A model generated the notes under the pieces. The model saw nothing but the letters and a program-made list of their open reading frames with translations, had not been told where the DNA came from and did not search any database. 64,000 bases of DNA from Macrostomum lignano (taxonomy: Eukaryota). Below are positions 10,304-45,650 of this stretch, piece by piece. The DNA lies in NCBI GenBank assembly GCA_002269645.1, contig NIVC01000911.1, positions 349,298 through 413,297 on the forward strand. The letters run 5' to 3'. A program made the position numbers and the translations under genes. Positions within the stretch are counted from its first letter, which is position 1. Each line of letters begins with the position of its first letter.

Positions 10304-13300
10304 ATGTCTTTTGGGCCTGGCGCTTCTGGTGGGACGCCGCCTCGTGCGCCTCAGCTATATAATCCGACAGCATTTGCCTCTGGCACTGCTCAATCAGCTA
10401 ATGCCCAATCCAAAGGCTGGAATCCCTTTGCTTCGCAGCCGCAGTCATCATCAATGTACGGTACACCTGTGTTTCCTGGAAACTATAGCAGTGCAGCCGA
10501 TCTAGATCCTGATAATTTTTTTTCATCTTTTGGCGTGTCTAGTCCGCCTAAGCCGAATTCCCAGCCGCCGCCGCCGCCGCCACCACAGGCGCAGCAGTAT
10601 TTTAAACCACAGAGCGCTTAGTAAGTTAATAATTAGTACATCTAATACACTCCATAAAGTTTTAGTAATATTTCATATTCTCGATCAAATCTCAGATATG
10701 CAATTTCACACATCATCTTACATTGAAATGTTAAACTCTTCTTAATCTCTGAGTTTGATTTTAGAACTCCCACATCATCAATCTCATGACTGTTGAGAGA
10801 AGGATTTCAGTCTCAGCATTAATGATTCAGTATCATTAATCTCTGAGTTAGATTTTACACTTCTCTCTTAGGATGAAAATTCACAATCTCATAATGATGC
10901 TACTCAATCTCAGGATTGGACTTCTCAATCTCAAGACGAGACTTCAGAATTCTCAATCTCAGGACGATACTTCTCAATCTGAGGATGAGACTTGAACTTC
11001 TCAATCTTAGGATGATGTGACTTACTTCTCAATCTCAGGATAAGATTTTAAACTTCTCAGTATTATAATGAGAATTAGTATATAGGAAGGATGTCGGAGT
11101 AAAAGCATCGATTCTTATTGTCAGAAACTCAGAGTGAGATTGCAGGCTAAATTACTCAACATTCCGAAGATTGAGGGAGAATTTTAGAGCGTCAAAACTT
11201 GAAAAAATATTGAACCAGTTAATCTCTTCAACCCATTTTTACCCTTGATATCAGCAGCTGCGATCAGCCGGACTCAAATGCTGCTCATCAAGCGCCTGTG
11301 GCGGCGCCTGCGGCTTCTACGGCGTACGCCTGGCCAACTGCCGACTATCGCGTCGATGATAACGAGGACAATGCTTCTGGCGAAGCGGGCGGCGGAGACT
11401 GGAACGACATCGATTTAGATGCGGAATCTCGCGGCGGAGGCAACGGCAGCGGCAGCGGCGGAGGCGGCGGCGGTTGGGAAGACGAGATCGGCATGCTAGG
11501 CGTGGCTTCCAGCGTGGACTCTCGCAATAAGGAGTATTTTTCTTCTTCTAGCAGCGGTAGCGGCGGCAGCAGCGGCAATGGCATGGACGAAGAAGACGAA
11601 GTTGATGACGATGGAGAGGGCAGCTCCGATGCCGTCCAAAGCGACACAGATAGCCAAATTGCTGGCGGGGAGCAGCCGCCCCATCAGGTTTATCAGCCGA
11701 ACGCTTCGGCTGCAGCTGTCAGTCAGGCTGACATGCATCAACAGTCTGTTTTAGAGTCTTTCCAGCCTGATTCATCAGCAGCTTCCGCTAGTCAGGGCTA
11801 TCAGATCTATCAGCCAAATTTAACCAATCCTCCTCCAGATACTACTAATGAGGATACTACTGCTACTCATCAGCAGCAGGATTATCCTGACTCTAACTAT
11901 GATCGTCTACAGAATATGGAGCAGCCTGAAGATAATGGGGAGTCTAGAAGTACACCACCGCCAGTAATGGGCAGTCAGGAGCATTGGCAGTTTGATGAAG
12001 CCCCGTCTGATAGTCAGTCCGCTCCGCCGGAATTGTTTGCCAACTCGGCTATTGAGCAGTCATTTCTTCCTACACCTGCCAATCAGGCTTATCAACTGCC
12101 AGCTGTGCAGTCAGCTGCTAGTGGCCATTCTTTGACTAACTCTTTGTTTCAACAGTCTGCGCCTTCGCTAGCTGGCTCTTTGTTCCAACCGTCTGCGACT
12201 ATTCCACCAGCTAGTCAGGCTTACCAACAATCGATGCCACCTCCAGTCAGTCAGGCTTACCAACAATCGGCGCCACCTCCAGCCAGTCAGGCTTACCAAC
12301 AATCGGCGCCACCTCCAGCCAGTCAGGCTTACCAACAATCGGCGCCACCTCCAGCTAGTCAGGCTTACCAACAATCGGCGCCACCTCCAGCCAGTCAGGC
12401 TTACCAACAATCGATGCCACCTCCAGCCAGTCAGGCTTATCAACAATCGGCGCCACCTCTAGCCAGTCAGGCTTATCAACAATCGGCGCCAACTCCACCA
12501 CCAGCCAGTCAAGCTTATCAACAATCGGCGCCAACTCCTCCACCAGTCAGCCAGGCTTATCAACTATCGGCGCCAACTCCACCACCAGTCAGCCAGGCTT
12601 ATCAACTATCGGCGCCACCTCCAGCCAGTGAGGCTTATCAACAATCGGTGCCACCTCCACCTCCAGTCAGCCAGGCTCATCAACAATCGGCACCACTTCC
12701 ATCTGCTAGGCAGGCTTATCAAAAATCGATGCCACCAGAAAGTCAGGCTTATCAACAATCGGCGCCAACTCCTCCACCAGCCAGTCAGGCTTACCAACAA
12801 TCGACGCCACCTCCAGCCAGTCAGGCTTATCAACAATTCGTGCCAACTCCACCACCAGCCAGTCAGGCTTATCAACAATCGACGACACCTCCAGCCAGTC
12901 AGGCTTACCAACAATCGATGCCACTTCCAGCTAGTCAGGCTTACCAACAATCGACGCCACCTCCAGCCAGTCAGGCTTATCAACAATCGACGCCACCTCC
13001 AGCCAGTCAGGCTTACCAGCAATCGACGCCACCTCCAGCCAGTCAGGCTTATCAACAATCGGCGCCACCTCCATCCAGTCAGGCTTACCAACAATCGACG
13101 CCACCTCCAGCCAGTCAGGCTTATCAACAATCGGCGCCACCTCCATCCAGTCAGGCTTACCAACAATCGACGCCACCTCCATCCAGTCAGGCTTATCAAC
13201 AATCGGCGCCACCACCAGCCAGTCAAGCTTATCAACAATCGGGGCCAACTTTAGCGCCTCCAGCCAGTCAGGCTTATCAACTATTGGCGCCACCTTCAGC

Positions 13301-16300
13301 CAGTCAGGCTTATCTACAATCGGCGCTACCTTCAGTCAGCCATGCTCATCAACAATCGGCGCCAACTCCTCCACCAGCCAGTCAGGCTTACCAACAATCG
13401 ACGCCACCTCCAGCCAGTCAGGCTTATCAACAATTCGTGCCAACTCCACCACCAGCCAGTCAGGCTTATCAACAATCGACGACACCTCCAGCCAGTCAGG
13501 CTTACCAACAATCGATGCCACTTCCAGCTAGTCAGGCTTACCAACAATCGACGCCACCTCCAGCCAGTCAGGCTTATCAACAATCGACGCCACCTCCAGC
13601 CAGTCAGGCTTACCAGCAATCGACGCCACCTCCAGCCAGTCAGGCTTATCAACAATCGGCGCCACCTCCATCCAGTCAGGCTTACCAACAATCGACGCCA
13701 CCTCCAGCCAGTCAGGCTTATCAACAATCGGCGCCACCTCCATCCAGTCAGGCTTACCAACAATCGACGCCACCTCCATCCAGTCAGGCTTATCAACAAT
13801 CGGCGCCACCACCAGCCAGTCAAGCTTATCAACAATCGGGGCCAACTTTAGCGCCTCCAGCCAGTCAGGCTTATCAACTATTGGCGCCACCTTCAGCCAG
13901 TCAGGCTTATCTACAATCGGCGCTACCTTCAGTCAGCCATGCTCATCAACAATCGGCGCCAACTCCTCCACCAGCCAGTCAAGTTTATCAACAATCGGCG
14001 CCAACTCTACCGCCTCCAGTCAGCCAGGCTCATCAACAATCGGCGCCAACTCTACCTCCAGTCAGCCAGGCTCATCAACAATCGGCGCCACTTCCATCTG
14101 CTAGGCAGGCTTATCAACAATCAATGCCACCAGAAAGTCAGGCTTATCAACAATCGGCGCCAACTCCTCCACCAACCAGTCAGGCTTATCAACAATCGGC
14201 GCCAACTCCAGTCAGCCAGGCTTATCAACAATCGGCGCCAACTCCACCACCAGCCAGTCAATCTTATCAACAATCGATGCCACCCGAAAGTCAGGCTCAT
14301 CAACAATCGGCGCCACCTTTTGGAGCCAGTCAGGCTTATCAACAAGCATCGCCACCACCAGCCAGTCAGGCTTATCAACAACCGGCGCCACCTTCAGTAA
14401 GCCAGGCTTATCAACAACCGGCGCCACCTCCAGACAGCGAGGCTTATCAACAACCGGCGCCACCTCCAGCCAGCCAGGCTTATCGTCTATCGGCGCCACC
14501 GCCACCTCCGGCACCCAGTCAGGCTTATCAACAATCGGCGCCACTTCCGTCTGCCAAACAGGCTTATCAACAATTGGCGCCACCTGCATCTGCCAGTCAG
14601 GCTTATCAAATATTCACACCAAGCATGGCAAGTTATTATTCCCAGTCTTCCACTGCAGTGACCACAGCTTTAACCAGCCAACCCTTGACTGCTTTGCCTA
14701 ACCAGTTTGCTCCAATGGCAAAACAACAACAACAGCAGCCGCAATTCTATCAACCATATAGCGCTGCAAACGATGACAAAGGCACCGCCGCTGCATTTTT
14801 TGATCACGGCAGCGACGAAGATGTCGATGTTAGAAAAGCTGGCGAAGTTGCTAGCGCTTCTGGTTCTGCAGCCGCCGCTAGTCCGAGAGAGGAGGCAACT
14901 ACAGCTTTGAGTGTAAGCAGCTTCCAGCTGCCGCCGCTGCCTCCGCCGCCTGTGCAGCAACAGCCGAAACAGCAACCTTCACATTCAACAGCGGCTGACG
15001 ATTTCAATCCTCAAGGATATCTTTACTTGCAACCAGGTCATCTGCAACAGCAGCAACAAGATAGTCAATTGGAACGAACCCTGACTCCGCCTGATAGTCG
15101 TCGGGCGATGTATCAGCCTCAGTATTCGCAACAGCAGCAACAGCCCGTGTCTTCTAGACCACCCTCTGTGCCAGCGGCTCCGTCATCTCAGGCTCAGGCT
15201 GCCTTTCATCAATCCAGCCCATTGATACCACAGCAGCAGCAGGCTCAGCCTCAGCCTCATCCACCAAAGGCTCAAATTCGAATGCCTGGCCTATCGGACA
15301 CTGCTAGGCCTAGCAGCGAAATTCAATCAATTATGGCCGAGTTAAAACCTAGCCGTCAGGTGCTAAGCGTGTCTCAACAGCAGCAACAGTTACAGGCGGC
15401 TCGACAGCAGCAGCAGCTACAGCAGCAGCAGCAATTGCAACAGCAGATGCAATTGTTGCAGCAGCAACAGCAACAGCTTCAACAGCAGTTATTGCAACAG
15501 CAATACGGTCGCTCGTCTAATAAACACTCTCGTACAACATCCAAGACGTCTAGTTTAGCTTCGAATAATTCCATAGAATTAGGCAGTTCGGCTACAGGCT
15601 TGCCAAACATGCCATCGGCTGTACAACAATCGCAACCGCAGCCGCAGTTGTACCCGAGTTCCAGTCTGTTTCCTTATCAGCAGCACCAGCAATACGGTTA
15701 TTCACCAGCTGGTAGCAGGACAGCCAGTAGGCCCACCAGCAGGCCGGCAAGTCGAGCTGGCAGTGTCGCTAGCGAGTTGGCCGCCTCAGCATCCAGCCCG
15801 GCGCTGGGCAGCCTTGCCCAACAGTACGAGCAGTACTTTGATAATTGTATCAGACAGCAGCCGCAGAATGCCGCGTATTTTCATCAGCAGCGACAGGAGT
15901 ATAGGAATTATTTTCTTAACTACATGAACTATGTCCAACAGGCGCAGTACGATGGAGACGGCGATGGCGATTATGCTCAACCGTCTGGTCGGTGCACTCC
16001 GTTAAAGTTCAATTTGCCTCACGCCAGACTGGGACTGGACGCTCCGGGACTTGTTGTACAGGTGGGATTGATATTGTCTGATCTGGATTTTTGTGAAATG
16101 GAGTTTTGTGAGAGAGAATCGCTCTTAGACTAATTCTATCTGAGTGAGAATCGGCCTTTACCTACCTGAGAGAGTGAGAGAATCGCCCTTTACCTACCTG
16201 AGAGAGAGAATCGCCCTTTACCTACCTGAGAGAGAGAATCGCCCTTTACCTACCTGAGAGAGAGAATCGCCCTTTACCTACCTGAGGGAGAGAATCGCCC

Positions 16301-19300
16301 TTTACCTACCTGAGAGTGAGAGAGAGAATCGCCCTTTACCTACCTGAGAGAGAGAGAGAATCGCCCTTTACCCACCTGAGAGTGAGAGAGAGAATCGCCC
16401 TTTACCTACCTGAGAGAGAGAGAGAGAATCGCCCTTTACCTACCTGAGAGTGAGAGAGAGAATCGCCCTTTACCTACCTGAGAGAGAGAATCGCCCTTTA
16501 CCTACCTGAGAGTGAGAGAGAGAATCGCCCTTTACCTACCTGAGGGAGAGAATCGCCCTTTACCTACCTGAGAGTGAGAGAGAGAATCGCCCTTTACCTA
16601 CCTGAGAGAGAGAGAGAATCGCCCTTTACCTACCTGAGAGTGAGAGAGAGAATCGCCCTTTACCTACCTGAGAGTGAGAGAGAGAGAGAGAGAGAGAGAA
16701 TCGGCCTTTACCTACCTGAGAGAGAGAATCGCCCTTTACTTACCTGAGAGAGAATCGCCCTTTACCTACCTGAGAGTGAGAGAGAGAATCGCCCTTTACC
16801 TACCTGAGGGAGAGAATCGCCCTTTACCTACCTGAGAGTGAGAGAGAGAATCGCCCTTTACCTACCTGAGAGAGAGAGAGAATCGCCCTTTACCTACCTG
16901 AGAGTGAGAGAGAATCGCCCTTTACCTACCTGAGAGTGAGAGAGAATCGCCCTTTACCTACCTGAGGGAGAGAATCGCCCTTTACCTACCTGAGAGAGAA
17001 TCGCCCTTTACCTACCTGAGAGAGAGAATCGGCCTTTACCTACCTGAGAGAGAATCGCCCTTTACCTACCTGAGAGAGAGAATCGCCCTTTACCTACCTG
17101 AGAGAGAATCGCCCTTTACCTACCTGAGAGAGAGAATCGCCCTTTACCTACCTGAGGGAGAGAATCGCCCTTTACCTACCTGAGAGTGAGAGAGAATCGC
17201 CCTTTACCCACCTGAGGGAGAGAATCGCCCTTTACCTACCTGAGGGAGAGAATCGCCCTTTACCTACCTGAGAGTGAGAGAGAGAGAGAGAGAGAGAGAA
17301 TCGGCCTTTACCTACCTGAGAGAGAGAATCGCCCTTTACTTACCTGAGAGAGAATCGCCCTTTACCTACCTGAGAGTGAGAGAGAGAATCGCCCTTTACC
17401 TACCTGAGGGAGAGAATCGCCCTTTACCTACCTGAGAGTGAGAGAGAGAATCGCCCTTTACCTACCTGAGAGAGAGAGAGAATCGCCCTTTACCTACCTG
17501 AGAGTGAGAGAGAATCGCCCTTTACCTACCTGAGAGTGAGAGAGAATCGCCCTTTACCTACCTGAGGGAGAGAATCGCCCTTTACCTACCTGAGAGAGAA
17601 TCGCCCTTTACCTACCTGAGAGAGAGAATCGGCCTTTACCTACCTGAGAGAGAATCGCCCTTTACCTACCTGAGAGAGAGAATCGCCCTTTACCTACCTG
17701 AGAGAGAATCGCCCTTTACCTACCTGAGAGAGAGAATCGCCCTTTACCTACCTGAGGGAGAGAATCGCCCTTTACCTACCTGAGAGTGAGAGAGAATCGC
17801 CCTTTACCCACCTGAGGGAGAGAATCGCCCTTTACCTACCTGAGGGAGAGAATCGCCCTTTACCTACCTGAGAGAGAATCGCCCTTTACCTACCTGAGAG
17901 AGAGAATCGCCCTTTACCTACCCGAGAGAGAGAATCGCCCTTTACCTACCTGAGGGAGAGAATCGCCCTTTACCTACCTGAGAGTGAGAGAGAATCGCCC
18001 TTTACCTACCTGAGGGAGAGAATCGCCCTTTACCTACCTGAGGGAGAGAATCGCCCTTTACCTACCTGAGGGAGAGAATCGCCCTTTACCTACCTGAGGG
18101 AGAGAATCGCCCTTTACCTACCTGAGGGAGAGAATCGCCCTTTACCTACCTGAGGGAGAGAATCGCCCTTTACCTACCTGAGGGAGAGAATCGCCCTTTA
18201 CCTACCTGAGAGTGAGAGAGAATCGCCCTTTACCTACCTGAGGGAGAGAATCGGCCTTTACCTACCTGAGAGAGAGAATCGCCCTTTACCTACCTGAGGG
18301 AGAGAATCGCCCTTTACCTACCTGAGAGTGAGAGAGAATCGCCCTTTACCTACCTGAGGGAGAGAATCGCCCTTTACCTACCTGAGAGAGAGAATCGCCC
18401 TTTACCTACCTGAGAGTGATAGAGAGGGAGAGAATCGCCCTTTACCCAAATTGCCCAGGTACCAGCAGCCAGACCAGATGAAGGCGAGCCAGCCCGCGTG
18501 CATCTACTCGAAAGCTCGTGCGTTGTTAGCGAAGCAGAAAAACTCGAATTCGTCTCCTTTCCCGGGCCGCTAGTTCGCGGTAAAACTTTAAAAAGCGAAG
18601 TTCGAGCCTATTTGAATGGCAAACTGCAACAGCTGCAAGATCGACTGGCTGGCGACTGGGATAGCGCGACTCTGCTTATTGGCTATCTTGACTTTCTCAT
18701 TCGGAATAATGGGGTGAGCTGCAGCTGCTACTGACGGGGTGTTAAATGTAATTATTAACAGCCGTCATAAAGGCATATTTACACAAATTGCAGGTGTGAA
18801 AATATACACTTAATTATAGTGATATTTAGACAGAAACATCTAGACCGCTATACAAGGGCAGGCTTATCAAGACTAACACTAACACAGACGCTCGAAGACA
18901 GGCACATTAAAAAAGACACATTAAGATAGGCATACTAAGACAGACACCTTAAGACAGTCGCATTAAGACAGGCACATTAAGACAGTCGCATTAAGACAGA
19001 TACCTTAAGACAGTCGCATTGACACCGGCACATTAAGACAGACACCTTAAGACAGGCACCTTAAGACAGGTGCATTAAAACTGGCACCTTGAGACAGTCG
19101 CATTAAGACAGATACCTTAGGACAGTCGCATTGAAACCGGCACATTAAGACAGACACCTTAAGACAGTCGAATTAAGACAGATACCTTAGGACAGTCGCA
19201 TTAAGACAGATACCTTAAGACAGTCGCATTGAAACCGGCACATTAAGACAGACACCTTAAGACAGGCACCTTGAGACAGGCGCATTAAGACAGATAGATA

Positions 19301-22300
19301 CCTTAAGACAGGTGCACTAAGACAGGCACATTAAGACAGTCACCTTGAGACAGACATATTAAGACAGTCACCTTGAGACAGACATATTAAGACAGTCACC
19401 TTGAGACAGACATATTAAGACAGTCACCTTGAGACAGACATATTAAGACAGTCACCTTGAGACAGACATATTAAGACAGTCACCTTGAGACAGACATATT
19501 AAGACAGTCACATTGAGACAGACATATTAAGACAGTCATCTTGAGACAGACATATTAAGACAGTCACCTTGAGACAGACATATTAAGACAGTCACCTTGA
19601 GACAGACATATTAAGACAGTCACCTTGAGACAGACTTATTAAAGCAGTCACCTTGAGACAGACATATTAAGACAGTCACATTGAGACAGACTTATTAAGA
19701 CAGTCACCTTGAGACAGACATATTAAGACAGTCACCTTGAGACAGACATATTAAGAGAGTCACCTTGAGACAGACATATTAAGACAGTCACCTTGAGACA
19801 GACTTATTAAAGCAGTCACCTTGAGACAGACATATTAAGACAGTCACCTTGAGACAGGTAGCACTAAGACTTTACACCCGAAGCCGCGCGCTAATACAAA
19901 AGTGCATAATCAATAAAATAAATAATTAAGCACCAGATATTAGTGCATGTGCACTATACAAAGACTGAGTGTTAATCACCGTCTCCCATCTCTATCTCCC
20001 TCTTCCTCACCACCAGATAACAATGGGCGCAGATCTGACCGACCTACTCCTAGAAGGTCACGAGCCTCGCACCTCCGAATATCGCGATCACGGCCTCGCT
20101 ATTCGGACTAATTCGTCCGATAATTTTGCTTCGTTGCCTCCAAGCGAACCGCCTAGCGGCAGGGCCAGCCCTACTGGCAGCGTGACCAGCATGCGGTCTG
20201 CCGGTCTCAGACAGCAGCAGCAGCAGCCGCCGTATTCTCTGCAGTCAAGCCAGGTGGCCCAGTTGATTGAACGACATGACGACAGGTTGATTGACAGGTT
20301 TCGCAAGTTGCTAATGTACGGACGGAAACGCGAGGCTTTGGAGTACGCTGGCAAACACGGCTTGTGGGGACAGGTGAGGTTTTTGTTTCGATTATATATT
20401 TGAAATTTATTAAAATATCTCTATCTTTATTCAGTATTTATCATTTATTAAGTGGACACTAATCGCTCCTGAACTTCAATCGGAATCGATCTTAATCCCT
20501 ACTCAAAACAGCCCCTAATCCTATTTAGAATCTCTTTAATCTTACTTATGGATTGAATCGCCCCTAATCTCTAAATAAAGTCGCTCCAATACTCACTTAG
20601 AGCCGCCCCTAATCCCTACTTAGAAACTCCCTAATTCCCAATTAGAATCTCCATAATCTCCAATTAAAATCACCCCTAATCTTTATTCAAAATCGCTCCT
20701 TAGTCCGAATTAGAATCGCCCCCAAAATTCCTACTTAGTATCGCTCCTAATTCTTTCTTAGAATCGCCTTTAATCCTTACTTAGAATTACCTGAATCCCT
20801 ACTTAGAATCACACCTGATCCCTACTTGCAATCGTCCCTAATACCTACTTATAAGCGCACCTAATCCGTACTGAGAATTGCCCCTAAGCCCTACTAAAGA
20901 TCGCCCTAATCCCCACTTAGAATGACACCTAAACCCTACTAAGAATCGCCCTAATCCCCACTTAGAATGACCCCTAATCTTTACTTAAAATCTCCTTAAT
21001 CCCTAATTAGAATCGCCCCTAATCCCTACTTAGAATTAACGTCATCTTTACTCAAAATCGCCCAAAATCCCCTAATTAGGAATCACCTATAATGCAGAAT
21101 TAAAGAACTAATCAAGCAGTATCTCTTACTCAACCGCAACACTGACAGGCGCTGTTCCTATCCTACAACATGGACCCTGGCGTGCACGCCAAGATGCTGG
21201 TCCGCTTTGCCAATCAAGCGATGCGAATGAACGACCCGCTTCAGACGCTCTACCAGTACATGCAAGGCCAAATGCCAGCCGTCACTGCCGGATTAATGGA
21301 TACGACCGATTCTGCTTGGGGAGACTGGAGGCCTCATCTGGCTATGCTGCTGTCAAATCAGCCAGATAGACCCGAACTGGCTTCTCAGGCTATCGCTCAG
21401 ATGGGCGACACTCTGGCCGCTAGGAGACTGCTGTACGCTTCCCAACTGTGCTATCTTATGGCTGGCGTACCGTTCTCCCAGTTCGGCTGCGATCGACAGG
21501 TATTGTAGCTTGTTTTGCAGCTGATTTCCGGACACCAGTACGTTCACTGCATATCTAGCTTGTTCATTAGACACCAAACCCTATTCACCGGACATATTCC
21601 TATTCACCGGACACTCATCCCTATTCACCGGACACTTATCCCTATTCACCGGACACATCTTTATTCACCGGACACGCATCCCTATTCACCGGACACTCAT
21701 TCCTATTCACCGGACACTTATCCCTATTTACCGGACGCTTATCTTTATTCACCGGACACTTATTCCTATTCACCGGACACTCATTCCAATTCACCGGACA
21801 CTTATTCCTATTTACCGGACGCTTATCTTTATTCACCGGACACTTATTCCTATTCACCGGACACTTATTCCTATTAACCGGACCCTCATTCCTATTCACC
21901 GGACACTTATCCCTATTCACCGGACACTTATCCCTATTCACCGGACATATTCCTATTCACCGGACACTTATCCCTATTCGCCGGACACTTATCCCTATTT
22001 ACCGGACGCTTATCTTTATTCACCGGACACTTATCCCTATTCACCGGACACATCTTTATTCACCGGACACGCATCCCTATTCACCGGACACTCATTCCTA
22101 TTCACCGGACACTTATCCCTATTTACCGGACGCTTATCTTTATTCACCGGACACTTATTCCTATTCACCGGACACTCATTCCAATTCACCGGACACTTAT
22201 CCCTATTTACCGGACGCTTATCTTTATTCACCGGACACTTATTCCTATTAACCGGACCCTCATTCCTATTCACCGGACACTTATCCCTATTCACCGGACA

Positions 22301-28300: not shown

Positions 28301-28886
28301 AAATCCAAGCAGAAGCTCCAGTCAGGCTCCTCCGCCACAGCAGCAGCCGCAGCAGCAGCAGCAACTGCCGCCTTCCAGTCAGGCAAAGGCAACAAAAGAA
28401 GGCCTGGTCAATCCCATATCCGAGGCCAATCGCCGCGGCATCCTGCCCCGAGTCATGAGCGGCATGCTGGCTTCGATGCGTCGTAAAATGGGCGTCAAAG
28501 AGGTGCACCTGCCTGACGATAGCAATCCCAGCATCATGTGGGACCCGGTCAACAAGGTGTGGGTCAATGTCAACGAGGGCGATGATCAGCGTCTGCTGAA
28601 CTCGGCGCCTCCGCCAGCTCCTGTCGCCGGCCAGTCGGGGCCGCAGCAGCCGCAGCAGCACCGGCTCGGGCCTGCCGCTCTTGGCCGACCCAAATACGTC
28701 GATCTGCTGAGCAGCCAGGCTGTTAAATCGTCATCGTCGCAGCAACAGCAGCAGCAGCAACCTCCCGGAGGTCCGCCGCCGCCTCCGATGCCGCCGCCGA
28801 TGCCACAACTATTTAATCCGGGCAGTTCCTCGTCTGGCCCGGCTGCCAATTATAACTTCTTTGTGCCGTCATCTACTGCTGATTGA
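10304..28886 (+). CDS. SEC16: Protein transport protein Sec16 (ER exit-site scaffold), 10 predicted coding exons, about 2683 aa
   Basis: Predicted exons 10304-10620, 11255-16061, 18459-18713, 20017-20373, 21149-21499, 23474-23713, 24084-24698, 25544-25681, 26905-27096, 28107-28886; all GT-AG and frame-consistent. Central conserved domain motifs: TPLKF..PHARLG, FPGPL, LIRNNG-ITMGADLTDLLL, RFRKLLMYGRKREALEYA..HGLWGQALFL, RFANQ...NDPLQTLYQ, WRPHLAMLLSN, MGDTLAAR..LYASQLCYLMA, FATNEAIQLTEVFEYA, PYKFMYATRLLDAG. C-terminal motif HLPDDSNPSIMWDPVNKVWVN. Exons 8 and 9 rest on splice sites and frame only. Confidence 0.93.
10745..11085 (+). repeat. Degenerate minisatellite of about 21 bp in SEC16 intron 1
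   Basis: Recurrent (A)CTTCTCAATCTCAGGATGAG-like units. Confidence 0.7.
12204..14610 (+). repeat. Coding tandem repeat (36-42 bp units) encoding SQAYQQSAPPPA variants, with an internal 597-bp duplication
   Basis: Visible in the 1611-aa ORF. Block 12751-13347 is repeated at 13348-13944 (identical shadow ORFs are offset by 597). Confidence 0.97.
16110..18447 (+). repeat. Minisatellite of about 28 bp, GAGAGAATCGCCCTTTACCTACCT plus variable GA, filling SEC16 intron 2
   Basis: Directly visible. Includes a 600-bp higher-order duplication (16646-17245 and 17246-17845). Confidence 0.98.
18890..19870 (+). repeat. 14/28-bp minisatellite TTAAGACAGTCACC-TTGAGACAGACATA in SEC16 intron 3
   Basis: Directly visible. 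Heterogeneous 14-mers at the 5' end give way to homogeneous 28-mer dimers at the 3' end. Confidence 0.96.
20460..21090 (+). repeat. Degenerate minisatellite of about 23 bp, TAGAATCGCCCCTAATCCCTACT, in SEC16 intron 4
   Basis: Directly visible; the units are diverged. Confidence 0.85.
21578..22868 (+). repeat. 21-bp minisatellite CTATTCACCGGACACTTATCC in SEC16 intron 5
   Basis: Directly visible. Confidence 0.97.
22885..23443 (+). repeat. 22-bp minisatellite TCTGTATGAGCAGACACAAGAA in SEC16 intron 5
   Basis: Directly visible; it follows the 21-bp array. Confidence 0.96.
23780..24030 (+). repeat. 40-bp minisatellite ATTATCCCCAAAGCGTCAATAAGTATCAGAATAGGAGAGA in SEC16 intron 6
   Basis: About six copies visible. 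Confidence 0.95.
24830..25393 (+). repeat. 31-bp minisatellite CAGTTGCTGGGCCACCAGCCTCCCAGATCCT in SEC16 intron 7
   Basis: Directly visible. Confidence 0.96.
26085..26700 (+). repeat. 36-bp minisatellite AGTTAGTCTATGGTTGAAACCCATGCTAAATAAGTC in SEC16 intron 8
   Basis: Directly visible. Confidence 0.96.
27211..27566. mobile_element. MITE-like element with long terminal inverted repeats in SEC16 intron 9
   Basis: AATATTGATTTTGTCAGCCTAACTGAGAATAAAGCCATC... is matched by ...GATGGCTTTATTCTCAGTTAGGCTGACAAAACCAATATT. The arms are over 100 bp, and there is no coding capacity. Confidence 0.88.
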
Positions 28887-33025: not shown

Positions 33026-33117
33026 CTGCGTACGTATCCGCGCGCTTGTGTGCCTGCTCAGGGGAGTCGGCGGAATGGGCAGCAATGCCTCTCGCCGGTT
33101 GTGTGACAATGTCGCTT
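33026..33117 (+). repeat. 92-bp dispersed repeat fragment (second copy at 42056-42147)
   Basis: CTGCGTACGTATCC...CTCAGGGGAGTC...CTCGCCGGTTGTGTGACAATGTCGCTT is shared between the two sites. Confidence 0.9.
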
Positions 33118-33240: not shown

Positions 33241-36200
33241 ATGCACACGGTGGATCTCAATAAGGTGTCCAGCTATTCATCAGAGGACCCAGCTTACCCT
33301 GCCAGCAACCTGTTGAAGAGCAGCGGCTCGCACAAATGGAAATGCGCCAAGCCTGGCGAACCGAAAGCAATTGTATGTTTCCAATTGAAATCGCCCGTTA
33401 AAATTGTACAGATTGATGTTGGCAATGAAGGCTCCGCGCTTGTTGAAGTGCTAGTTAGCCGGGATGCGGATCCCACGGACACCTGGCAGGTGCTTCTGGC
33501 AGCTTCGTCTCTCATGAGCCCGGCTGATGCTAAGAAGGGCTCCGATTTGAATCGAGTGCGAACTTTCCAATCTGACCAGCTGCATAAGCCGGCTTGCAAT
33601 GAAAAATGGGATAAGATTAGAGTAGTTTGCAGTCAGCCATTTAGTAAGTCTCTGCAGTACGGCTTGAGTTTTATTAAGTTTGTCTCCGCTGATGAGGCCG
33701 CTACAAGCGGTGGCACCGTTCACACCAAGGTGATTTTCGATTTCTTTTCGTTCGATTCTGTAGTTAAACCCCTCGTTTAAAAACACGGATTTCCCTATTT
33801 ACAAAACCCCGGAATTCCCCATTTGAGAAACCCGGAATTCCCCATTTGCGTAACCCGGAATTCCCCATTTGAGAAACCCGGAATTCCTCATCTGAGTAAC
33901 CCGGAATTTCCCATCTGAGTAACCCAGAATTCCCCGTCTGAGCAACCCGGAATTCCCCATTTGAGAAACCTGGAATTTCCCATTTGAGAAACCCGATATT
34001 CCCCATTTGAGTAACCCGGAATTCGCTATCTGAGTAACCCGGAATCCCCCATCTGAGTAACCCGGAATTCCCCATCTGTGTAACCCGGAATCCCCCATCT
34101 GAGTAACCCGGAATTCCCCATCTGAGTAACCCGGAATCACCCATTTGAGAAACCCGGAATTCTCCATTTGAAAACCCCATTCGAAGACACGGATTTCCTC
34201 AATTGAGAACCGCAGAAGTCCCCATTGAGAAACCCGGAATTCCCCATCTGATTAACTTGGAATTCCCCATTTAAGAAACCCGGAATTCCCTATTTGAGTA
34301 ACCCGGAATTCCTCTTTTGAGAAACCCGGAATTCCCTATCTGAGTAACCCGGAATTTTCCATTTTAGTAACCCCAGGAATCCCATTAAAAACCAGGAATT
34401 CCCCATTTGAGAAACCCGGAATCCACCATTTAAGAACCCGGAATTCCCTACTTGAAAACCCCGGAATTCCCATTTCAGAAACCCCGAATTCCCTATTAAC
34501 AACCCCGGAAATCCCGATTAGAGACCTCGGAATTTCCCTTTTAAAAACCCCGAAATTCCACATTAAAAAACCGCAGAGTTCCCCATTAGCGACCTCGGAA
34601 TTCCCTATTTAAAAACCACGAAATTATAATAGGGAATTTAAGACCCCCGAAATTCCCCATTTGAAACCTCCGGAATTCCCCACTTAGGAACACAGAATCC
34701 CCATCTTTGAGAACACAGAATCCCCATTTTTAAGAACACAGAATCCCTATCTTTGAGAACACAGAATCCCCATTTTTAAGAACACAGAATCCCCATTTTT
34801 GAGAACACAGAATCCCCATTTTTGAGAACACAGAATTCCCATTTTTAAGAACACAGAATCCCCATTTTTGAGAACACAGAATCCCCATTTTTGAGAACAC
34901 AGAATCCCCATTTTTGAGAACACAGAATCCCCATTTTTGAGAACACAGAATCCCCATTTTTGAGAACACAGAATCCCCATTTTTGAGAACACAGAATCCC
35001 CATTTTTGAGAACACAGAATCCCCTCGCCAAATCTCAGGTCGGCGACTTCGCCATTCGCGACGACGACCAAGACGAAATCGACGATCAGAAGAATGGCGT
35101 CGGAGACGACAAGAAGAAGCCGGCCGCCGGCAAGAACGGTTCTGAGGACTCGATAACCCGCCCCGGCGGTTTGTTCTCGTCTAGGGTGAAGAAGGGCGGC
35201 GCTGAGGAGGCCGCTGGGGAAGCTAAAAAGAAGACGCCAGTTGCTGCTGCTGCTGCTGCAACCGCTAAGCCAAAACTGTTCAAAGCATCTTCTGGAGAAG
35301 AAGAAGAAGAAGACGATGAAGAAAAAGACAAAGCAGCAAAAGCAGAAGATCGGCGAGACAGAGAAAAAAAGACAGCCGATAAGAAGGCTTCGTCGAGCAG
35401 TGTGGCGGGAGAGGAGTTCTCCCAGCTGCTCAAAGGTGTGGTGTTCGCCATGTCCGGCTACCAGAATCCCAGGCGGGGACAGCTGAGGGATAAAGCGACT
35501 AAGATGGGGGCGAAGTACCGGCCCGACTGGGGGCCCGGCTGCACCCACCTGGTGTGCGCGTTCGCTAATACGCCTAAGTTTAACCAGGTGAGACTGGCTT
35601 GCTTACTTTGGGTTGAGGGGCACTAAATAATCGTCAATCTAGTCAAAAAGAATTCCCATCCACCCCAAAAAGAATCGCCTATCTACCTAGAAAGAATCCC
35701 CCTTCTACCCATAGAAAATCACCTATCCACCCCAAAGAGAATCGCCCATCCACCCCAAAGAATCGCCCATCCACAGCAAAGAGAATCGCCCACCCACCCA
35801 AAGAGAATCGCCCATCCACCCCGAAGAGAATCGCCCATCCACACCAAAGAGAATCGCCCATCCACACCAAAGAGAATCGCCCATCCACCCCAAAGAGAAT
35901 CGCCCATCCACCCCGAAGAGAATCGCCCATCCACACCAAAGAGAATCGCCCATCCACACCAAAGAGAATCGCCCATCCACACCGAAGAGAATCGCCCATC
36001 CACACCAAAGAGAATCGCCCATCCACCCGAAGAGAATCGCCCATCCACACCAAAGAGAATCGCCCATCCACCCGAAGAGAATCGCCCATCCACACCAAAG
36101 AGAATCGCCCATCCACACCAAAGAGAATCGCCCATCCACCCCGAAGAGAATCGCCCATCCACACCAAAGAGAATCGCCCATCCACACCAAAGAGAATCGC

Positions 36201-39200
36201 CCATCCACACCAAAGAGAATCGCCCATCCACACCAAAGAGAATCGCCCATCCACACCAAAGAGAATCGCCCATCCACACCAAAGAGAATCGCCCATCCAC
36301 ACCAAAAGAATCGCCCATCCACACCAAAGAGAATCGCCCATCCACACCAAAGAGAATCGCCCATCCACACCAAAGAGAATCGCCCATCCACCCCGAAGAG
36401 AATCGCCCATCCACACCAAAGAGAATCGCCCATCCACACCAAAGAGAATCGCCCATCCACACTGAAGAGAATCGCCCATCCACCCCAAAGAGAATCGCCC
36501 ATCCACACCAAAGAGAATCGCCCATCCACACCAAAGAGAATCGCCCATCCACACCGAAGAGAATCGCCCATCCACACCAAAGAGAATCGCCCATCCACAC
36601 CGAAGAGAATCGCCCATCCACACCAAAGAGAATCGCCCATCCACCCTGAAGAGAATCGCCCATCCACCCTGAAGAGAATCGCCCATCCACCCTGAAGAGA
36701 ATCGCCCATCCACCCTGAAGAGAATCGCCCATCCACACCAAAGAGAATCGCCCATCCACACCAAAGAGAATCGCCCATCCACACCGAAGAGAATCGCCCA
36801 TCCACACCAAAGAGAATCGCCCATCCACCCTGAAGAGAATCGCCCATCCACCCCGAAGAGAATCGCCCATCCACACCAAAGAGAATCGCCCATCCACACC
36901 AAAGAGAATCGCCCATCCACACCAAAGAGAATCGCCCATCCACACCAAAGAGAATCGCCCATCCACACCAAAGAGAATCGCCCATCCACCCGAAGAGAAT
37001 CGCCCATCCACACCAAAGAGAATCGCCCATCCACCCGAAGAGAATCGCCCATCCACACCAAAGAGAATCGCCCATCCACACCAAAGAGAATCGCCCATCC
37101 ACACCAAAGAGAATCGCCCATCCACACCAAAGAGAATCGCCCATCCACACCGAAGAGAATCGCCCATCCACACCAAAGAGAATCGCCCATCCACACCGAA
37201 GAGAATCGCCCATCCACACCAAAGAGAATCGCCCATCCACAGCAAAGAGAATCGCCCATCCACCCTGAAGAGAATCGCCCATCCACCCTGAAGAGAATCG
37301 CCCATCCACCCCGAAGAGAATCGCCCATCCACACCAAAGAGAATCGCCCATCCACACCAAAGAGAATCGCCCATCCACACCAAAGAGAATCGCCCATCCA
37401 CACCGAAGAGAATCGCCCATCCACCCGAAGAGAATCGCCCATCCACACCAAAGAGAATCGCCCATCCACACCAAAGAGAATCGCCCATCCACACCAAAGA
37501 GAATCGCCCATCCACACCGAAGAGAATCGCCCATCCACACCAAAGAGAATCGCCCATCCACCCCGAAGAGAATCGCCCATCCACACCAAAGAGAATCGCC
37601 CATCCACCCCGAAGAGAATCGCCCATCCACACCAAAGAGAATCGCCCATCCACACCAAAGAGAATCGCCCATCCACACCAAAGAGAATCGCCCATCCACA
37701 CCAAAGAGAATCGCCCATCCACACCAAAGAGAATCGCCCATCCACCCCGAAGAGAATCGCCCGCATTGACTCCACCGCAGGTCCGCGGCAAGGGCAAGAT
37801 CGTCCTAGCCGAATGGATCGAGCAGTGCTACAAAGAACGCCGCTTAGTCGATTGGCAACTCTTTGATCTCGCCGCCAAGGCTGCTGGAAACGGCGGCCGA
37901 CCCACCAGAGCGGCGGCCGCCAAGAAGCCGAACTATGTCGCCGACGACGACAGCGACGAAGACAGCGGCGACGGCAAGGGTCGCCGCGGCGGCAGCAAAA
38001 ATCGGCGATCGACGGCCGCGATAACGTCAACAAGAAAGCGTCGCCAGCGAGGCGACGTCAGCGACAGCGAAGAAAACGACGACGATTTTGACGACGAAGA
38101 CAGCGACGCGGACGACAAGCGGGCCAGGGCGCAGCGAGCGTCGAAAAAGCGTCGACGGGGCGGCGAATCCAGCGACGAAGAATGGCGCGGTCGCGGCGGC
38201 GGCGGCGCTGACGAGGACGATGATGAAGACGACGATGAAGAGTTGCCGGAAGATGAAGATGACGACAGGGAAGCTGGAGACAGTGACAGCGACTACAAAG
38301 TTGGCGGCAAGAAGCGAAAGAAGGCGTCATCTGGCGGCGGCAAGTCGCCTTTAAAGCGTCGAAAATCGTCGTCTTCAACGTCGTCGAAAAAGAAGAAAAC
38401 TCAAAAGCCGCAGTTGCCCAGGCAACCGTCGTCAAGGCCGCTCAGAGCGGCCGCTGTAGTGGCCGCCGCCAAAGCGAAGATCAGCGACAGCGACGAAGAT
38501 TTCGCCGAAGACAACGACGATGATGAAGAGCGGAGGCTGACTACAAAACCGAAGCCGAAAACCGCCACCCCGTCGCCGCCAAAACGATCGCCGAGAAAGC
38601 AGAAAAAGTTCGATGATAAAGGCGACGACAAAGATGAAGGCAGCGACGACAGCGGAGCCGGCTGGTCGGTTGTTCGGCGAAAGAAGGGCGACGGCGATAG
38701 CGCCAGCGGTAGTCCGAAAAAAACTGCAAACAAATCGCGACGCCCAGTTAGCGACAGCGAAGAAGACGACTCTGTTGCTAAGGACTCTGTCGCTAAGGAC
38801 GCCGTTGCGAAGGATGCAGTTGCTAAGGATGCCGTTGCTAAGGACACCGTTGCCAAGGGCCCCGTTGCTAATGACGCCGAATTTGACGCCGATACTGATA
38901 TCGAAGACGACAAAAAAGCCGACAACAAACCGGAAGAGTTGCCGGACTTTTTTAAAGGCTCGCATTTTTTTATTTACGGCGACTCAATCGATTTGGACGA
39001 AAGGCGTCAGTTGAAGCGAGTGATCTACGCCTTCAACGGCTACTTAGATGAGTACAACGGGCCAAGCGTTAAGTACATCGTCACTAGAAACGCTTGGGAT
39101 AAAAATTTCGACGACGCCCTTGAAGACAATGCCAACGTGATGTTTGTTAAACCCGACTGGCTATTTGAATTGGAGAAATCTAGGAAATATTGCCAGCCGC

Positions 39201-39226
39201 ACAAGTACCAGGTGGTGGCCAACTGA
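33241..39226 (+). CDS. XRCC1: DNA repair protein XRCC1, 3 coding exons, about 827 aa
   Basis: Exons 33241-33729, 35039-35587, 37781-39226. N-terminal domain SSEDP.YPASNLLK...W..AKPGE...IDVGNEGSALVEVLV...LLAASSLMSP...NRVR.F...WDKIRVVCSQPF...YGLSFI; BRCT1 LLKGVVFAMSGYQNPRRGQLRDKATKMGAKYRPDWGPGCTHLVCAFANTPKFNQV; BRCT2 ELPDFFKGSHFFIYG...RQLKRVIYAFNGYL. Confidence 0.97.
33785..35024 (+). repeat. Two related 23-bp minisatellites in XRCC1 intron 1: CCGGAATTCCCCATTTGAGTAAC, then ACAGAATCCCCATTTTTGAGAAC
   Basis: Directly visible; the switch occurs near 34686. Confidence 0.96.
35650..37762 (+). repeat. 23-bp minisatellite AGAGAATCGCCCATCCACACCAA filling XRCC1 intron 2
   Basis: About 90 copies visible; they generate spurious long minus-strand ORFs. 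Confidence 0.98.
38770..38875 (+). repeat. 15-bp coding repeat (AKDAV)n in the XRCC1 linker
   Basis: VAKDSVAKDAVAKDAVAKDAVAKDTVAKGPVAND. Confidence 0.9.
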
Positions 39227-41245: not shown

Positions 41246-41298
<53 letters not shown>

Positions 41299-41317: not shown

Positions 41318-41352
<35 letters not shown>

Positions 41353-41435: not shown

Positions 41436-41554
41436 ATATTCCGGACAGACCCAGCCAGCAAAGCCACTCTAATTAAAGCAACACAATGAGTTAAAATTGG
41501 TCTGATCAATAAGCTGGCATTGGTTCGCATTACAGCCAACCAGAGCAGGTCACC

Positions 41555-44500
41555 ATGGAAGACTGCCTTGGCCGCACAGCCAGCCTAGAAGAGCTGCACC
41601 ACGAAGTGGAAAGTCTGTTTCTGCGCGAGTTTGGCTGCAAACCAGACAGTGTTGTGTACGCGCCGGGCCGGGTGAACATCATTGGCGAGCACACTGACTA
41701 TAATGACGGGTTTGTGCTGCCGATGGCGCTGCCCCTGGTTACTATGATGGCTGGCAAACGAATTGAAAGCAATGTGGTAGGTTGGCGAAAACTTAGAAAA
41801 AGTCTTATAATTAAATGCAAAATTCATCATACCGCTGGTTGCAGTCCTTAAAAGGGCCGTTTTAATACAATCCATAGGTAGTGTTTCGAGTAGGCCGTAG
41901 CCCAGCGGCCCGGGCTCGATTCCAAGTGCAGTCACATTAATTTGGGGTTGAATTGGAATCTCGGCTTGGCTCTGCTCGTGTAATTAACGCCATTGAGATG
42001 GGCCAACCCCCAAGGCACAGTGAAGTGTACATGCCTAACGATAAATAAATGGCTGCTGCGTACGTATCCACGCGCTTGTGTGCCTGCTCAGGGGAGTCTA
42101 CGGAATGGGCAGTAATGCGCCTCGCCGGTTGTGTGACAATGTCGCTTAACCCTAGCCAGGGCGCACACAGCCCAATGCATCCAAGTTATATGCATCCATC
42201 CTATTTGCCAGGTCAATGTTGTCACAGGCGGCAAAGACGTCACCACCCGCTTAACGCCCGGCTCGCCCAAGGACATCTGCGTCAGTTTTCCTGTGCCCGA
42301 TCCTAAACAGGAACGACGCGACGGGGCTCAACGCATCCCGGACGTCGAGTGGGCCAACTATGTGAAAGGAGTGCTGGTCAATTATAAACGATTGTGCGGC
42401 GCGTTCAATTCGGCTATTGTCAGCACTGTGCCGCTTGGCGGGGGCCTGTCTTCGTCTGCCGCGCTCGAAGTTGCCACCTATACTCTGCTTGAGCAGCTGT
42501 TTCCTATCGATCATCCCGTGACGCCTGTGAGTGGAATTCAACTCGCATACCGGAGTGACATGATTGGTGTACCTCACTGACATGATTGATGTATTGCAGG
42601 GTCATGATTGATGTATCGGAGAGACATGATTGATGTATCGGAGAGACATGATTGATGTATCGGAGAGACATGATTGATGTATCGCAGGGACATGATTGAT
42701 GTATCGGAGAGACATGATTGATGTATCGGAGAGACATGATTGATGTATCGGAGAGACATGATTGATATATCGGAGAGACATGATTGATAAATCGGAGAGA
42801 CATGATTGATGTATCGGAGAGACATGATTGATGTATCAGAGAGACATGATTGATGTATCGGAGAGACATGATTGATGTATCGGAGAGACATGATTGATGT
42901 ATCGGAGAGACATAATGGATGTATCGGAGAGACTTGATTGATGTATCGGAGAGACATGATTGATGTATCAGAGAGACATGATTGATGTATCGGAGAGACA
43001 TGATTGATGTATCAGAGAGCCATAATTGATGTATTGCAGGGTCATGATTGATGTATCGGAGAGACATGATTGATGTATCGGAGAGACATGATTGATAAAT
43101 CGGAGAGACATGATTGATGTATCCGAGAGACATGATTGATGTATCAGAGAGACATGATTGATGTATCAGAGAGACATGATTGATGTATCGGAGAGACATG
43201 ATTGATGTATCAGAGAAACATGATTGATGTATCGGAGAGACATGATTGATATATCAGAGAGACATGATTGATATATCGGAGAGACATGATTGATATATCG
43301 GAGAGACATGATTGATATATCGGAGAGACATGATTGATAAATCGGAGAGACATGATTGATGTATCGGAGAGACATGATTGATGTATCAGAGAGACATGAT
43401 TGATGTATCGGAGAGACATGATTGATGTATCGGAGAGACATGATTGATGTATCGGAGAGACATAATGGATGTATCGGAGAGACTTGATTGATGTATCGGA
43501 GAGACATGATTGATGTATCAGAGAGACATGATTGATGTATCGGAGAGACATGATTGATGTATCAGAGAGACATGATTGATGTATCGGAGAGACTTGATTG
43601 ATGTATCGGAGAGACATGATTGATGTATCGGAGAGACATGATTGATGTATCGGAGAGACATGATTGATGTATTGCAGGGACATGATTGATGTATCGGAGA
43701 GACATGATTGATGTATCAGAGAAACATGATTGATGTATCGGAGAGACATGATTGATATATCAGAGAGACATGATTGATATATCGGAGAGACATGATTGAT
43801 ATATCGGAGAGACATGATTGATATATCGGAGAGACATGATTGATAAATCGGAGAGACATGATTGATGTATCGGAGAGACATGATTGATGTATCAGAGAGA
43901 CATGATTGATGTATCGGAGAGACATGATTGATGTATCAGAGAGACATGATTGATGTATCAGAGAGACATGATTGATGTATCGGAGAGACATGATTGATGT
44001 ATCGGAGAGACATGATTGATGTATTGCAGGGACATGATTGATGTATCGGAGAGACATGATTGATGTATCAGAGAGACATGATTGATGTATCAGAGAGCCA
44101 TAATTGATGTATTGCAGGGTCATGATTGATGTATCGGAGAGACATGATTGATGTATCGGAGAGACATGATTGATAAATCGGAGAGACATTAGGTACAGCT
44201 GAGTGGTATTAAAAGTTAATTGACGTTAATTTGCACCAGAGTGAACTCAATGACACTCGCCGCAAACCGCTGCAGGTGGAGAAGGCCCTGGCCTGTCAGG
44301 AAGCTGAGCACGTGTACGCTAACGTTCCTTGCGGCATCATGGACCAGTTTGTCAGCGTCATGGCCACAGAGAATCACCTGCTGTGCATCGACTGCGAGTC
44401 AATGCGAGTCACCCAGGTGCCGTTCCAGAATCCTCACGTGGTGGTGCTGATTACTAATTCAAATGTGCGCCACAATCTGGGCAGCAGCGAGTACCCTGTG

Positions 44501-45650
44501 AGGCGGCAGCAGTGCGAAGCTGCGAGCAAAGCCATGGGCAAGCGGTCTCTGCGACTGTGCACCTTGGAGGATCTGGAAGCTGCCGGCATTGAGGATGAGG
44601 TGAGTTCCACCGGGTACATCCTGCGATAGACACATGCAGACACGGCAGTGGACACATTGTGATATTCATTCAGACACAGCAATGGACACATCCCCACAGA
44701 CATTCAGACAGCAATGGACACATCCCGACAGACATTCAGACACAACAGTGGACACATCCGGACAGAAATTCAGACACAGCAGTGGACAAATTTGGATAAA
44801 CATGCAGACATACAGCGGACACGTTGTGACAGACATTCAGGCACAGCAGTGGACACATCCCATTGAACATGCAGGCACAGCAGTGGACACATCCCATTGA
44901 ACATGCAGGCACAGCAGTGGACACATCCCATTAAACATGCAGGCACAGCAGTGGACACATCCCATTAAACATGCAGACACAGCAGTGGACACATCCCATT
45001 AAACATGCAGACACAGCAGTGGACACATCCCATTAAACATGCAGACACAGCAGTGGACACATCCCATTAAACATGCAGACACAGCAGTGGACACATCCCA
45101 TTAAACATGCAGGCACAGCAGTGGACACATCCCATTAAACATGCAGACACAGCAGTGGACACATCCCATTAAACATGCAGGCACAGCAGTGGACACATCC
45201 CATTAAACATGCAGGCACAGCAGTGGACACATTAACAGCCATTAACATCACTCGCTGATTTGCCCACCCCAGACCATCAAGCGCCGCGCTCATCACGTGA
45301 TCAGCGAAAACGCCCGAGTCCAGCAGGCCATCGAGAGCTTGAAGACCACCGACTATTACCGACTTGGCGCCCTCATGAACGAGTCGCACGCCAGCCTGCG
45401 CGAAGACTTCGCCGTCTCCTGCCCGGAGATCGACCTGCTGGTTGACATCGCCCAGAGGCAGCCGGGCGTGTATGGCAGCCGCATCACGGGCGGCGGCTTC
45501 GGCGGCTGCACCGTCACCCTGGTGAAGCGCAGTCACGTTGACGACCTGATGAAGGCCATCTACGATGGCTACGCTTCGCCGGAACGTAGGCCGACCTTCT
45601 ACGTGTGCAATGCATCTGGCGGGGCAGCGGTGTTCAATACTGGCACATGA
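41555..45650 (+). CDS. GALK1: Galactokinase (GHMP kinase family), 4 coding exons, about 412 aa
   Basis: Exons 41555-41776, 42212-42526, 44276-44599, 45273-45650. Motifs [55 protein letters not shown]...[55 protein letters not shown]. Confidence 0.97.
41875..42160 (+). mobile_element. Possible tRNA-derived SINE in GALK1 intron 1
   Basis: B-box-like GGCTCGATTCC (41913-41923) with a weak A-box-like sequence upstream. The 3' part is homologous to 33026-33117. Confidence 0.4.
42555..44188 (+). repeat. 22-bp minisatellite CATGATTGATGTATCGGAGAGA in GALK1 intron 2
   Basis: About 74 copies visible. Confidence 0.98.
44630..45232 (+). repeat. 34-bp minisatellite CAGCAGTGGACACATCCCATTAAACATGCAGGCA in GALK1 intron 3
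   Basis: Degenerate 5' units and homogeneous 3' units. Confidence 0.95.

Follow-up and report, generated by a model that had tools for sequence, protein, structure and literature searches.

Minisatellites of the Jeffreys type (variable number tandem repeats, VNTRs) form families that have a common core motif, and the introns of Emiliania huxleyi are reportedly rich in short tandem repeats. In amphioxus, the Adh3 and globin genes carry intronic minisatellites and "mirages", which have been discussed as a possible route to new intron positions (PMC3087553). Tandem-repeat density in Daphnia pulex peaks in introns, which has been called "a rare feature in animals" (PMC3152781). Simple and tandem repeats make up 15% of the Macrostomum lignano genome in assembly Mlig_3_7 and are blamed for its difficult assembly (PMC5730564); mean intron length in this species is 1,114 bp, compared with 558 bp in one congener and 692 bp in another, a comparison that leaves repeat content uncharacterised (PMC10468722). 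Considered here is a 64-kb window, the terminal 64 kb of the 413,297-bp M. lignano contig NIVC01000911.1, in which minisatellites fill most introns of three genes: a Sec16-like gene, XRCC1, and the galactokinase gene (GALK). All counts given below refer to this one window and its three genes, which all lie on the + strand.

These arrays resemble classical VNTRs in their head-to-tail units of 14-40 bp, tens of copies, fast copy-number change between near-identical copies of the locus, internal higher-order block duplications, and a core of about 10 bp in a subset of arrays. They differ in their extreme density (75% of intron DNA, 12 of 14 consecutive introns) and in the M. lignano core sequence, which is unlike the human core. 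Amphioxus offers a parallel in minisatellites within introns of ordinary genes, undisturbed splicing and length instability (PMC3087553); mirage units, however, span the exon-intron boundary and contain exon sequence, whereas the M. lignano units are unrelated to flanking exons and the arrays also fill the spacers between genes. D. pulex is similar in the importance of units longer than 6 bp and in the marked strandedness of intronic motifs, but its overall tandem-repeat density is low and introns made largely of arrays are not described (PMC3152781). The M. lignano genome paper treats the same assembly and does not split repeats between introns and other compartments (PMC5730564). Literature searches, whose coverage did not extend to the first genome paper, found no description of intronic minisatellites in Macrostomum, and a prior description is possible.

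Minisatellites in introns

Tandem arrays, called by Tandem Repeats Finder (TRF) with its default maximum period of 500 bp, are present in 12 of the 14 coding introns, one or two in each. A first-pass annotation of the window had claimed as much; TRF recovers every array that it listed, the gene models agree, and the stretch that it singled out (10621-45272) begins exactly at the first donor and ends exactly at the last acceptor. The arrays are minisatellites, with head-to-tail units, TRF periods of 14-40 bp, 5-93 copies and 68-95% matches; the periods are, in order along the introns, 21/28, 28, 14/56, 23, 21+22, 40, 31, 36, 23+23, 23, 22, and 34 bp (Table 1). Arrays account for 12,736 of 16,902 intron bases (75.4%), so that tandem amplification does make up most of the intron length, as had been proposed, and they cover 90-97% of six introns (Sec16 introns 2 and 5, XRCC1 introns 1 and 2, GALK introns 2 and 3). 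The array in Sec16 intron 2 also has a higher-order period of 600 bp.

Array edges lie 24-415 nt from the donor and 14-221 nt from the acceptor. The gap between array and acceptor AG is as small as 14 nt in XRCC1 intron 1, 18 nt in XRCC1 intron 2, 30 nt in Sec16 intron 5, 40 nt in GALK intron 3 and 42 nt in Sec16 intron 2, with the GT-AG ends kept throughout, in line with the earlier description. Because only 14-18 unique nucleotides are left before the acceptor, the branch point of the XRCC1 introns probably lies inside the array or at its edge. The acceptor-side sequence of Sec16 intron 2 (18417-18458) and of the XRCC1 introns (35025-35038, 37763-37780) resembles a diverged final repeat copy, and many units close with a pyrimidine-rich stretch and AG that look acceptor-like by eye.

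When the arrays are removed, seven introns are left with 64-124 nt of unique sequence. This is the size class of the 70- and 109-nt introns of the neighbouring glycine-rich gene, both array-free as the first-pass annotation had stated, which points to ordinary short introns that have been inflated.

The two introns without arrays carry other inserts, previously labelled a miniature inverted-repeat transposable element (MITE) and a short interspersed element (SINE)-like insert; both labels find a match in the sequence, in an inverted repeat with 126-nt arms (Sec16 intron 9) and a single copy of a dispersed element of 92 bp (GALK intron 1). The 92-bp element has no tRNA or Rfam match. Each of these introns also holds a two-copy proto-repeat, of 23 nt in Sec16 intron 9 (27743-27788) and 15 nt in GALK intron 1 (42175-42204). 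Rfam and tRNA scans of the introns found no non-coding RNAs, and the empty scans rule out the hosting of small nucleolar RNAs or of SINE tRNA heads as an explanation for the arrays.

Gene models

Sec16, XRCC1, and GALK lie head to tail in tandem. Their models were predicted from sequence and homologues with GT-AG junctions and were checked for frame; they contain nine, two, and three coding introns, respectively, and no stop codon interrupts the spliced reading frames. By tblastn, M. lignano protein PAA83346.1 maps to the four GALK exons, each with 98-100% identity, and the top protein matches of the concatenated galactokinase open reading frames (ORFs) are M. lignano proteins. The XRCC1 model agrees in start, end, and length (827 amino acids, aa) with the gene called on the contig. 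The Sec16 protein matches Pfam TPR_Sec16 (E=3e-43) and the Sec16 mid-region. Since protein searches for the M. lignano orthologues of XRCC1 and Sec16 returned none, these two models follow splice logic and distant homologues. The weak points of the Sec16 model are introns 8 and 9, which surround a doubtful exon 9, and the acceptor of intron 7, at 25543 or 25411; the counts are not materially altered by either.

Units that share a core

According to the first-pass annotation each intron had its own private unit, a description that does not hold for all of them. There are 163 exact occurrences of the 10-mer AGAATCGCCC, all on the + strand, against 0.1 expected by chance, and they are confined to three arrays of two genes, those in introns 2 and 4 of Sec16 and in intron 2 of XRCC1; the units of Sec16 intron 2 and XRCC1 intron 2 have a 12-mer in common. 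The related core GAATYNCCC is carried by both arrays of XRCC1 intron 1 and by the spacer array at 31600, which brings the core to six arrays in one orientation, five intronic and one in a spacer. Unit-to-unit alignments within this core family outscore all 200 shuffles; for the other approximately 15 arrays, such alignments found no relationship between units beyond chance.

Evenness and strand bias

The 14 intronic arrays are spread at about one per intron, more regularly than random placement would give: placing 14 arrays so that at least 12 of the 14 introns are struck has P = 0.0004 under weights proportional to unique intron length, and P = 0.014 if every intron counts the same. We read this evenness as near-saturation of the lone free site in each short intron. 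On the sense strand, the A+C content of intronic arrays is 0.59 overall and exceeds 0.5 in 13 of 14; only two of the seven spacer arrays are A+C-rich, and unique intron DNA, at 0.498, has no bias. GT dinucleotides are scarce in most intronic arrays (11 against about 21 expected over the unit consensuses, a statistically weak difference), the array of Sec16 intron 8 being a GT-rich exception. The A+C bias is read here as the effect of a filter that splicing imposes on decoy GU sites.

Arrays outside introns

Arrays are not confined to introns, and the intron specificity implied by the first-pass annotation is not supported in this window. They cover 75% of introns, 48% and 52% of the two spacers between the genes, and 23% of coding exons; coverage is 3% in the 5' flank and 36% in the 3' flank, or 2% there without a satellite of 664-bp units. 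The latter occupies 6.2 kb, was missed by TRF because its unit exceeds the default maximum period, and probably explains the assembly break at the end of the window.

Within coding sequence, array periods are 36, 15, 12, and 9 bp, all divisible by three; among the 14 intronic arrays, only the 21-bp arrays of Sec16 introns 1 and 5 and the 36-bp array of Sec16 intron 8 have such a period. Sec16 exon 2 (11255-16061) is a single exon of 4.8 kb, about half of which encodes a 12-residue repeat. Its array, which is the largest 36-bp array of the window and is coding, contrary to the earlier account, holds an in-frame block duplication of 597 bp, and the 1611-aa frame stays open despite 9% indels.

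The gene cluster has 21 arrays in 7.5 kb of unique DNA and the flanks have 7 in 21.7 kb, which makes arrays about ninefold more frequent per kilobase in the cluster.

Turnover among copies of the locus

Two further copies of the XRCC1-GALK region are present in assembly GCA_002269645.1, on contigs NIVC01000422.1 (L001) and NIVC01002398.1 (L002). The comparison covers the XRCC1-GALK region, with the Sec16 introns outside it; the locus of protein PAA74958.1, NIVC01000911.1:380834-404947 (L003), is base for base the window itself at 31537-55650. Over XRCC1 and GALK, identity among the three copies is 98-100% in unique DNA. Arrays are found at the same sites and with the same units, and their lengths differ by up to twofold: in the window, L001 and L002, respectively, the array measures 2119, 2100, and 3296 bp in XRCC1 intron 2, 1639, 1573, and 3179 bp in GALK intron 2, 337, 314, and 496 bp in XRCC1 intron 1 (array b), and 601, 601, and 465 bp in GALK intron 3. 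The first-pass annotation had proposed a turnover check across strains and sister species; among near-identical paralogous copies, the length differences indicate that tandem amplification is ongoing.

The big gains among copies arose when blocks of 1.2-1.6 kb were duplicated in tandem. A non-intronic 53-bp unit downstream of GALK, present in 2.2 copies in the window, has reached 24 copies at 98% identity in L001; this is an array caught just after birth. Length differences between copies, block duplications, higher-order periods and growth of the 53-mer are together signatures of slippage and unequal exchange.

Identity among the copies is mosaic, in that L002 is close to the window across XRCC1 (99.6-100%) and L001 equals it over most of GALK (100%), which suggests recombination or gene conversion among duplicated copies of a hidden-polyploid genome.

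Age of the introns

Whether the arrays created the introns or expanded them bears on a further claim, that a single process creates or expands introns by tandem amplification. Intron positions of orthologues were projected onto protein alignments after reconstruction of their exon structures. For GALK, Lottia and Actinia have five intron positions in common and none of the three found in M. lignano. None of the 14 introns in Elysia XRCC1 corresponds to M. lignano XRCC1 intron 2; intron 1 lies 5-7 residues from a phase-0 Elysia intron in a poorly aligned stretch. Sec16 intron 3 (after RNNG, phase 0) matches exactly an intron position of bird SEC16B, in which no counterpart was found for Sec16 introns 2, 4, 5, and 6. 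In all, eight of ten comparable positions have no counterpart in the mollusc, cnidarian, or bird orthologue, and 13 of the 14 introns are in phase 0. The phase-0 excess and the lineage-specific introns are notable, and the positions suggest massive intron loss and regain in the M. lignano lineage. An animal Sec16 homologue of 51% identity (L005; Logan SRR23372228, contig 111939) has its central domain in one uninterrupted ORF; this 21-kb contig is essentially array-free, lacks the M. lignano introns and serves as a weak outgroup only.

The arrays themselves look unlike creators of introns. Units of the 14 arrays align to their own flanking exons with scores within the non-cognate range, which rules out mirage repeats. 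No AGGT-duplication signature was found at intron boundaries, where cognate ends share 5.2-5.3 of 22 matches and non-cognate ends 5.0-5.7; cognate ends being no more alike than non-cognate ones, a boundary-duplication origin is rejected, within the limits of a test that would miss a signal lost with age. With arrays masked, self-BLAST of the window found no similarity between introns, the 92-bp element alone linking one intron and one spacer, and the array flanks show no terminal inverted repeats; introner-like or transposon-derived introns and transposon-borne arrays are rejected on these two grounds. From the array in the ancestral Sec16 intron 3, the unrelated units and the plain boundaries it follows that arrays inflate pre-existing introns. 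There is no sign in this window that arrays make introns: expansion is supported, and creation is not.

Table 1. Positions of genes, introns, tandem arrays, and other elements in the 64-kb window
Feature	Position	Strand	Description	Basis
Sec16-like gene	10304..28886	+	~2678 aa, 10 exons	splice models, homologue tblastn, Pfam
Sec16 introns 1-5	10621-11254, 16062-18458, 18714-20016, 20374-21148, 21500-23473	+		splice models
Sec16 introns 6-9	23714-24083, 24699-25543, 25682-26919, 27097-28106	+		splice models
XRCC1 gene	33241..39226	+	827 aa, 3 exons; introns 33730-35038, 35588-37780	homologue tblastn, splice models
Galactokinase gene	41555..45650	+	412 aa, 4 exons; introns 41777-42211, 42527-44275, 44600-45272	tblastn
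Sec16 intron 1 array	10903..11059	+	21/28/49-bp units, ~5 copies	TRF
Sec16 intron 2 array	16142..18416	+	28-bp unit GAGAGAGAATCGCCCTTTACCTACCTGA, 78 copies, 95% of intron	TRF
Sec16 intron 3 array	18895..19857	+	14/28/56-bp units, 963 bp	TRF
Sec16 intron 4 array	20555..21036	+	degenerate 23-bp unit GAATCGCCCCTAATTCTTACTTA, core family	TRF
Sec16 intron 5 array a	21579..22868	+	21-bp unit, 62 copies	TRF
Sec16 intron 5 array b	22884..23443	+	22-bp unit, 25 copies	TRF
Sec16 intron 6 array	23780..24034	+	40-bp unit, 6.4 copies	TRF
Sec16 intron 7 array	24846..25393	+	31-bp unit, 17.7 copies	TRF
Sec16 intron 8 array	26097..26698	+	36-bp unit, 16.7 copies	TRF
XRCC1 intron 1 array a	33779..34686	+	degenerate 23-bp unit AAAAACCCGGAATTCCCCATTTC	TRF
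XRCC1 intron 1 array b	34688..35024	+	23-bp unit GAACACAGAATCCCCATTTTTGA, 95% homogeneous	TRF
XRCC1 intron 2 array	35644..37762	+	23-bp unit CAAAGAGAATCGCCCATCCACAC, 93 copies, 97% of intron	TRF
GALK intron 2 array	42551..44189	+	22-bp unit, 74.5 copies; donor 24 nt upstream	TRF
GALK intron 3 array	44632..45232	+	34-bp unit, 17.8 copies	TRF
Inverted repeat, MITE/foldback-like	27211..27566	.	126-nt arms; in array-free Sec16 intron 9	
92-bp dispersed element	42056..42147	+	in array-free GALK intron 1	
92-bp dispersed element, second copy	33026..33117		upstream of XRCC1 start codon; 93% identity between copies	
Coding array, Sec16 exon 2	12207..14609	+	36 bp (12 aa, PPPASQAYQQSA), 64 copies, in frame	
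Coding array, XRCC1 exon 3	38774..38879	+	15 bp (VAKDA)	
Spacer Sec16-XRCC1	28887-33240	+	five arrays, 28880-32960, 48% array	
Spacer array	28880-29182	+	4/24 bp, begins at Sec16 stop codon	TRF
Spacer array	29768-29986	+	21 bp	TRF
Spacer array	30265-30686	+	GA-rich	TRF
Spacer array	31600-31994	+	16 bp, core-like	TRF
Spacer array	32185-32960	+	27 bp	TRF
Spacer XRCC1-GALK	39227-41554	+	two arrays, 52% array	
Spacer array	39556-40281	+	35/70 bp	TRF
Spacer array	40958-41432	+	(TGTC)n	TRF
53-bp proto-array, non-intronic	48492..48608	+	2.2 copies, downstream of GALK	
Macro-satellite	57831..64000	.	664-bp unit x 9.3 copies, 99% identity, reaches contig end	
Neighbouring signal-peptide, glycine-rich gene	49967..51390	+	introns 50385-50493 (109 bp), 50815-50884 (70 bp), both phase 1	
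Reverse-transcriptase fragment (RVT_1)	666-1070	-	in array-poor 5' flank	
Harbinger/PIF-type transposase helix-turn-helix domain fragment	3929-4531	-	in array-poor 5' flank	

The glycine-rich neighbour encodes a protein of 414 aa with a signal peptide and no Pfam match; DNA identity among the three copies is 92-93% for this gene, compared with 99-100% in the housekeeping genes.

Origin of the arrays

We infer, as the account that is rather probable, a repeat-prone genome in which slippage and unequal exchange act in any tolerant DNA and their products are filtered by splicing and coding constraints. The three genes would have started with short introns, most with about 60-130 nt of unique sequence; short local duplications would arise often wherever the DNA tolerates them, and arrays would then grow and shrink through replication slippage and unequal exchange of large blocks. 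Selection in introns would let arrays persist only in the interior, clear of the donor by 24 nt or more and of the acceptor by 14 nt or more, and would bias them to G+T-poor sense strands, in which GU decoy donor sites are few; arrays in coding sequence would survive only if their period is a multiple of three. The appearance of one minisatellite per intron would arise because a short intron has about one free interior site and array birth is near saturation. The claim of a systematic rather than scattered accumulation therefore survives in part: the spread over introns is even, but arrays are equally conspicuous outside introns. Several points weigh against a repeat-prone genome as the whole account. 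The sample is a single window, and six arrays with one core in one orientation are not predicted by a purely local origin. The ninefold excess of the gene cluster means that a regional factor (transcription, chromatin, recombination) may matter, and since the three copies are syntenic over much of the 3' flank too, the age of the DNA alone is not an obvious cause of that excess. Finally, with three genes on one strand, orientation relative to transcription is inseparable from chromosomal orientation.

These points give some room to a process linked with introns or with (germline) transcription, which would preferentially seed and amplify arrays in transcribed non-coding DNA of housekeeping genes, for example by transcription-replication conflicts or open-chromatin recombination. 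For the suggested coupling to germline transcription, the one hint is the sense-strand A+C bias of intronic arrays. It would fit the coincidence of the array-rich domain with three co-oriented genes, spacers and the start of a 3' untranslated region included, together with the cluster excess, the very even spread, the strand bias that spacer arrays lack, the sense orientation of all core-family arrays, and the array-free introns of a small neighbour gene that is probably tissue-specific. Such a process is nevertheless unlikely, given spacers that are half array, recent growth of the non-intronic 53-mer, a 6-kb satellite in gene-free DNA, a strand bias explained equally well by selection against decoy GU sites, and a sample of three genes on one strand. 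The shared cores and the 12-mer would be expected of a dispersed or mobile minisatellite family with core AGAATCGCCC or GAATYNCCC that seeds arrays at new sites, whether by template switching, reintegrated extrachromosomal repeat circles or a carrier transposon, many of the seemingly private arrays then being diverged members of a few families; but the remaining arrays are unrelated beyond chance, the unique flanks of the core arrays have no common sequence, terminal inverted repeats or transposon hallmarks, and the non-array sequence of XRCC1 intron 2 (56 + 18 nt) is too little for a carrier element, which makes such a family quite improbable. That arrays created the introns, as intronised tandem duplications (Rogers-type AGGT) or from boundary repeats like amphioxus mirages, is hardly credible. 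Lineage-specific positions, the phase-0 excess, and the in-frame coding minisatellite of Sec16 exon 2, a precursor of the type that would be needed, speak for it; against it stand units unlike the flanking exons, cognate exon and intron ends that are no more similar (5.2 matches of 22) than non-cognate ends (5.7), an array in the clearly ancestral Sec16 intron 3, and unique remainders that resemble ordinary short introns. The local pattern is real and striking, and repeat proneness of the genome is its most economical explanation.

Significance

A slim chance attaches to a more far-reaching possibility, that sequence-directed, transcription-oriented amplification or a mobile AGAATCGCCC-core family preferentially seeds arrays in the introns and outrons of germline-expressed genes. 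If true, this seeding could link lineage-specific phase-0 introns to inflated intron size, and it would add a new way for introns to grow and possibly to arise.

If the pattern is genome-wide, intronic arrays would explain much of the approximately twofold intron length of M. lignano relative to its congeners, as well as its poor assembly. Intronic arrays affect gene modelling, the design of primers and guides, and transgene design in this regeneration model. They also constitute a natural splicing experiment on the repeat load that an intron tolerates and on the parts that must remain unique, approximately 24 nt beside the 5' splice site and 14 nt beside the 3' splice site. The core-sharing arrays and the G+T-poor bias are leads to the way in which minisatellites originate and are filtered.

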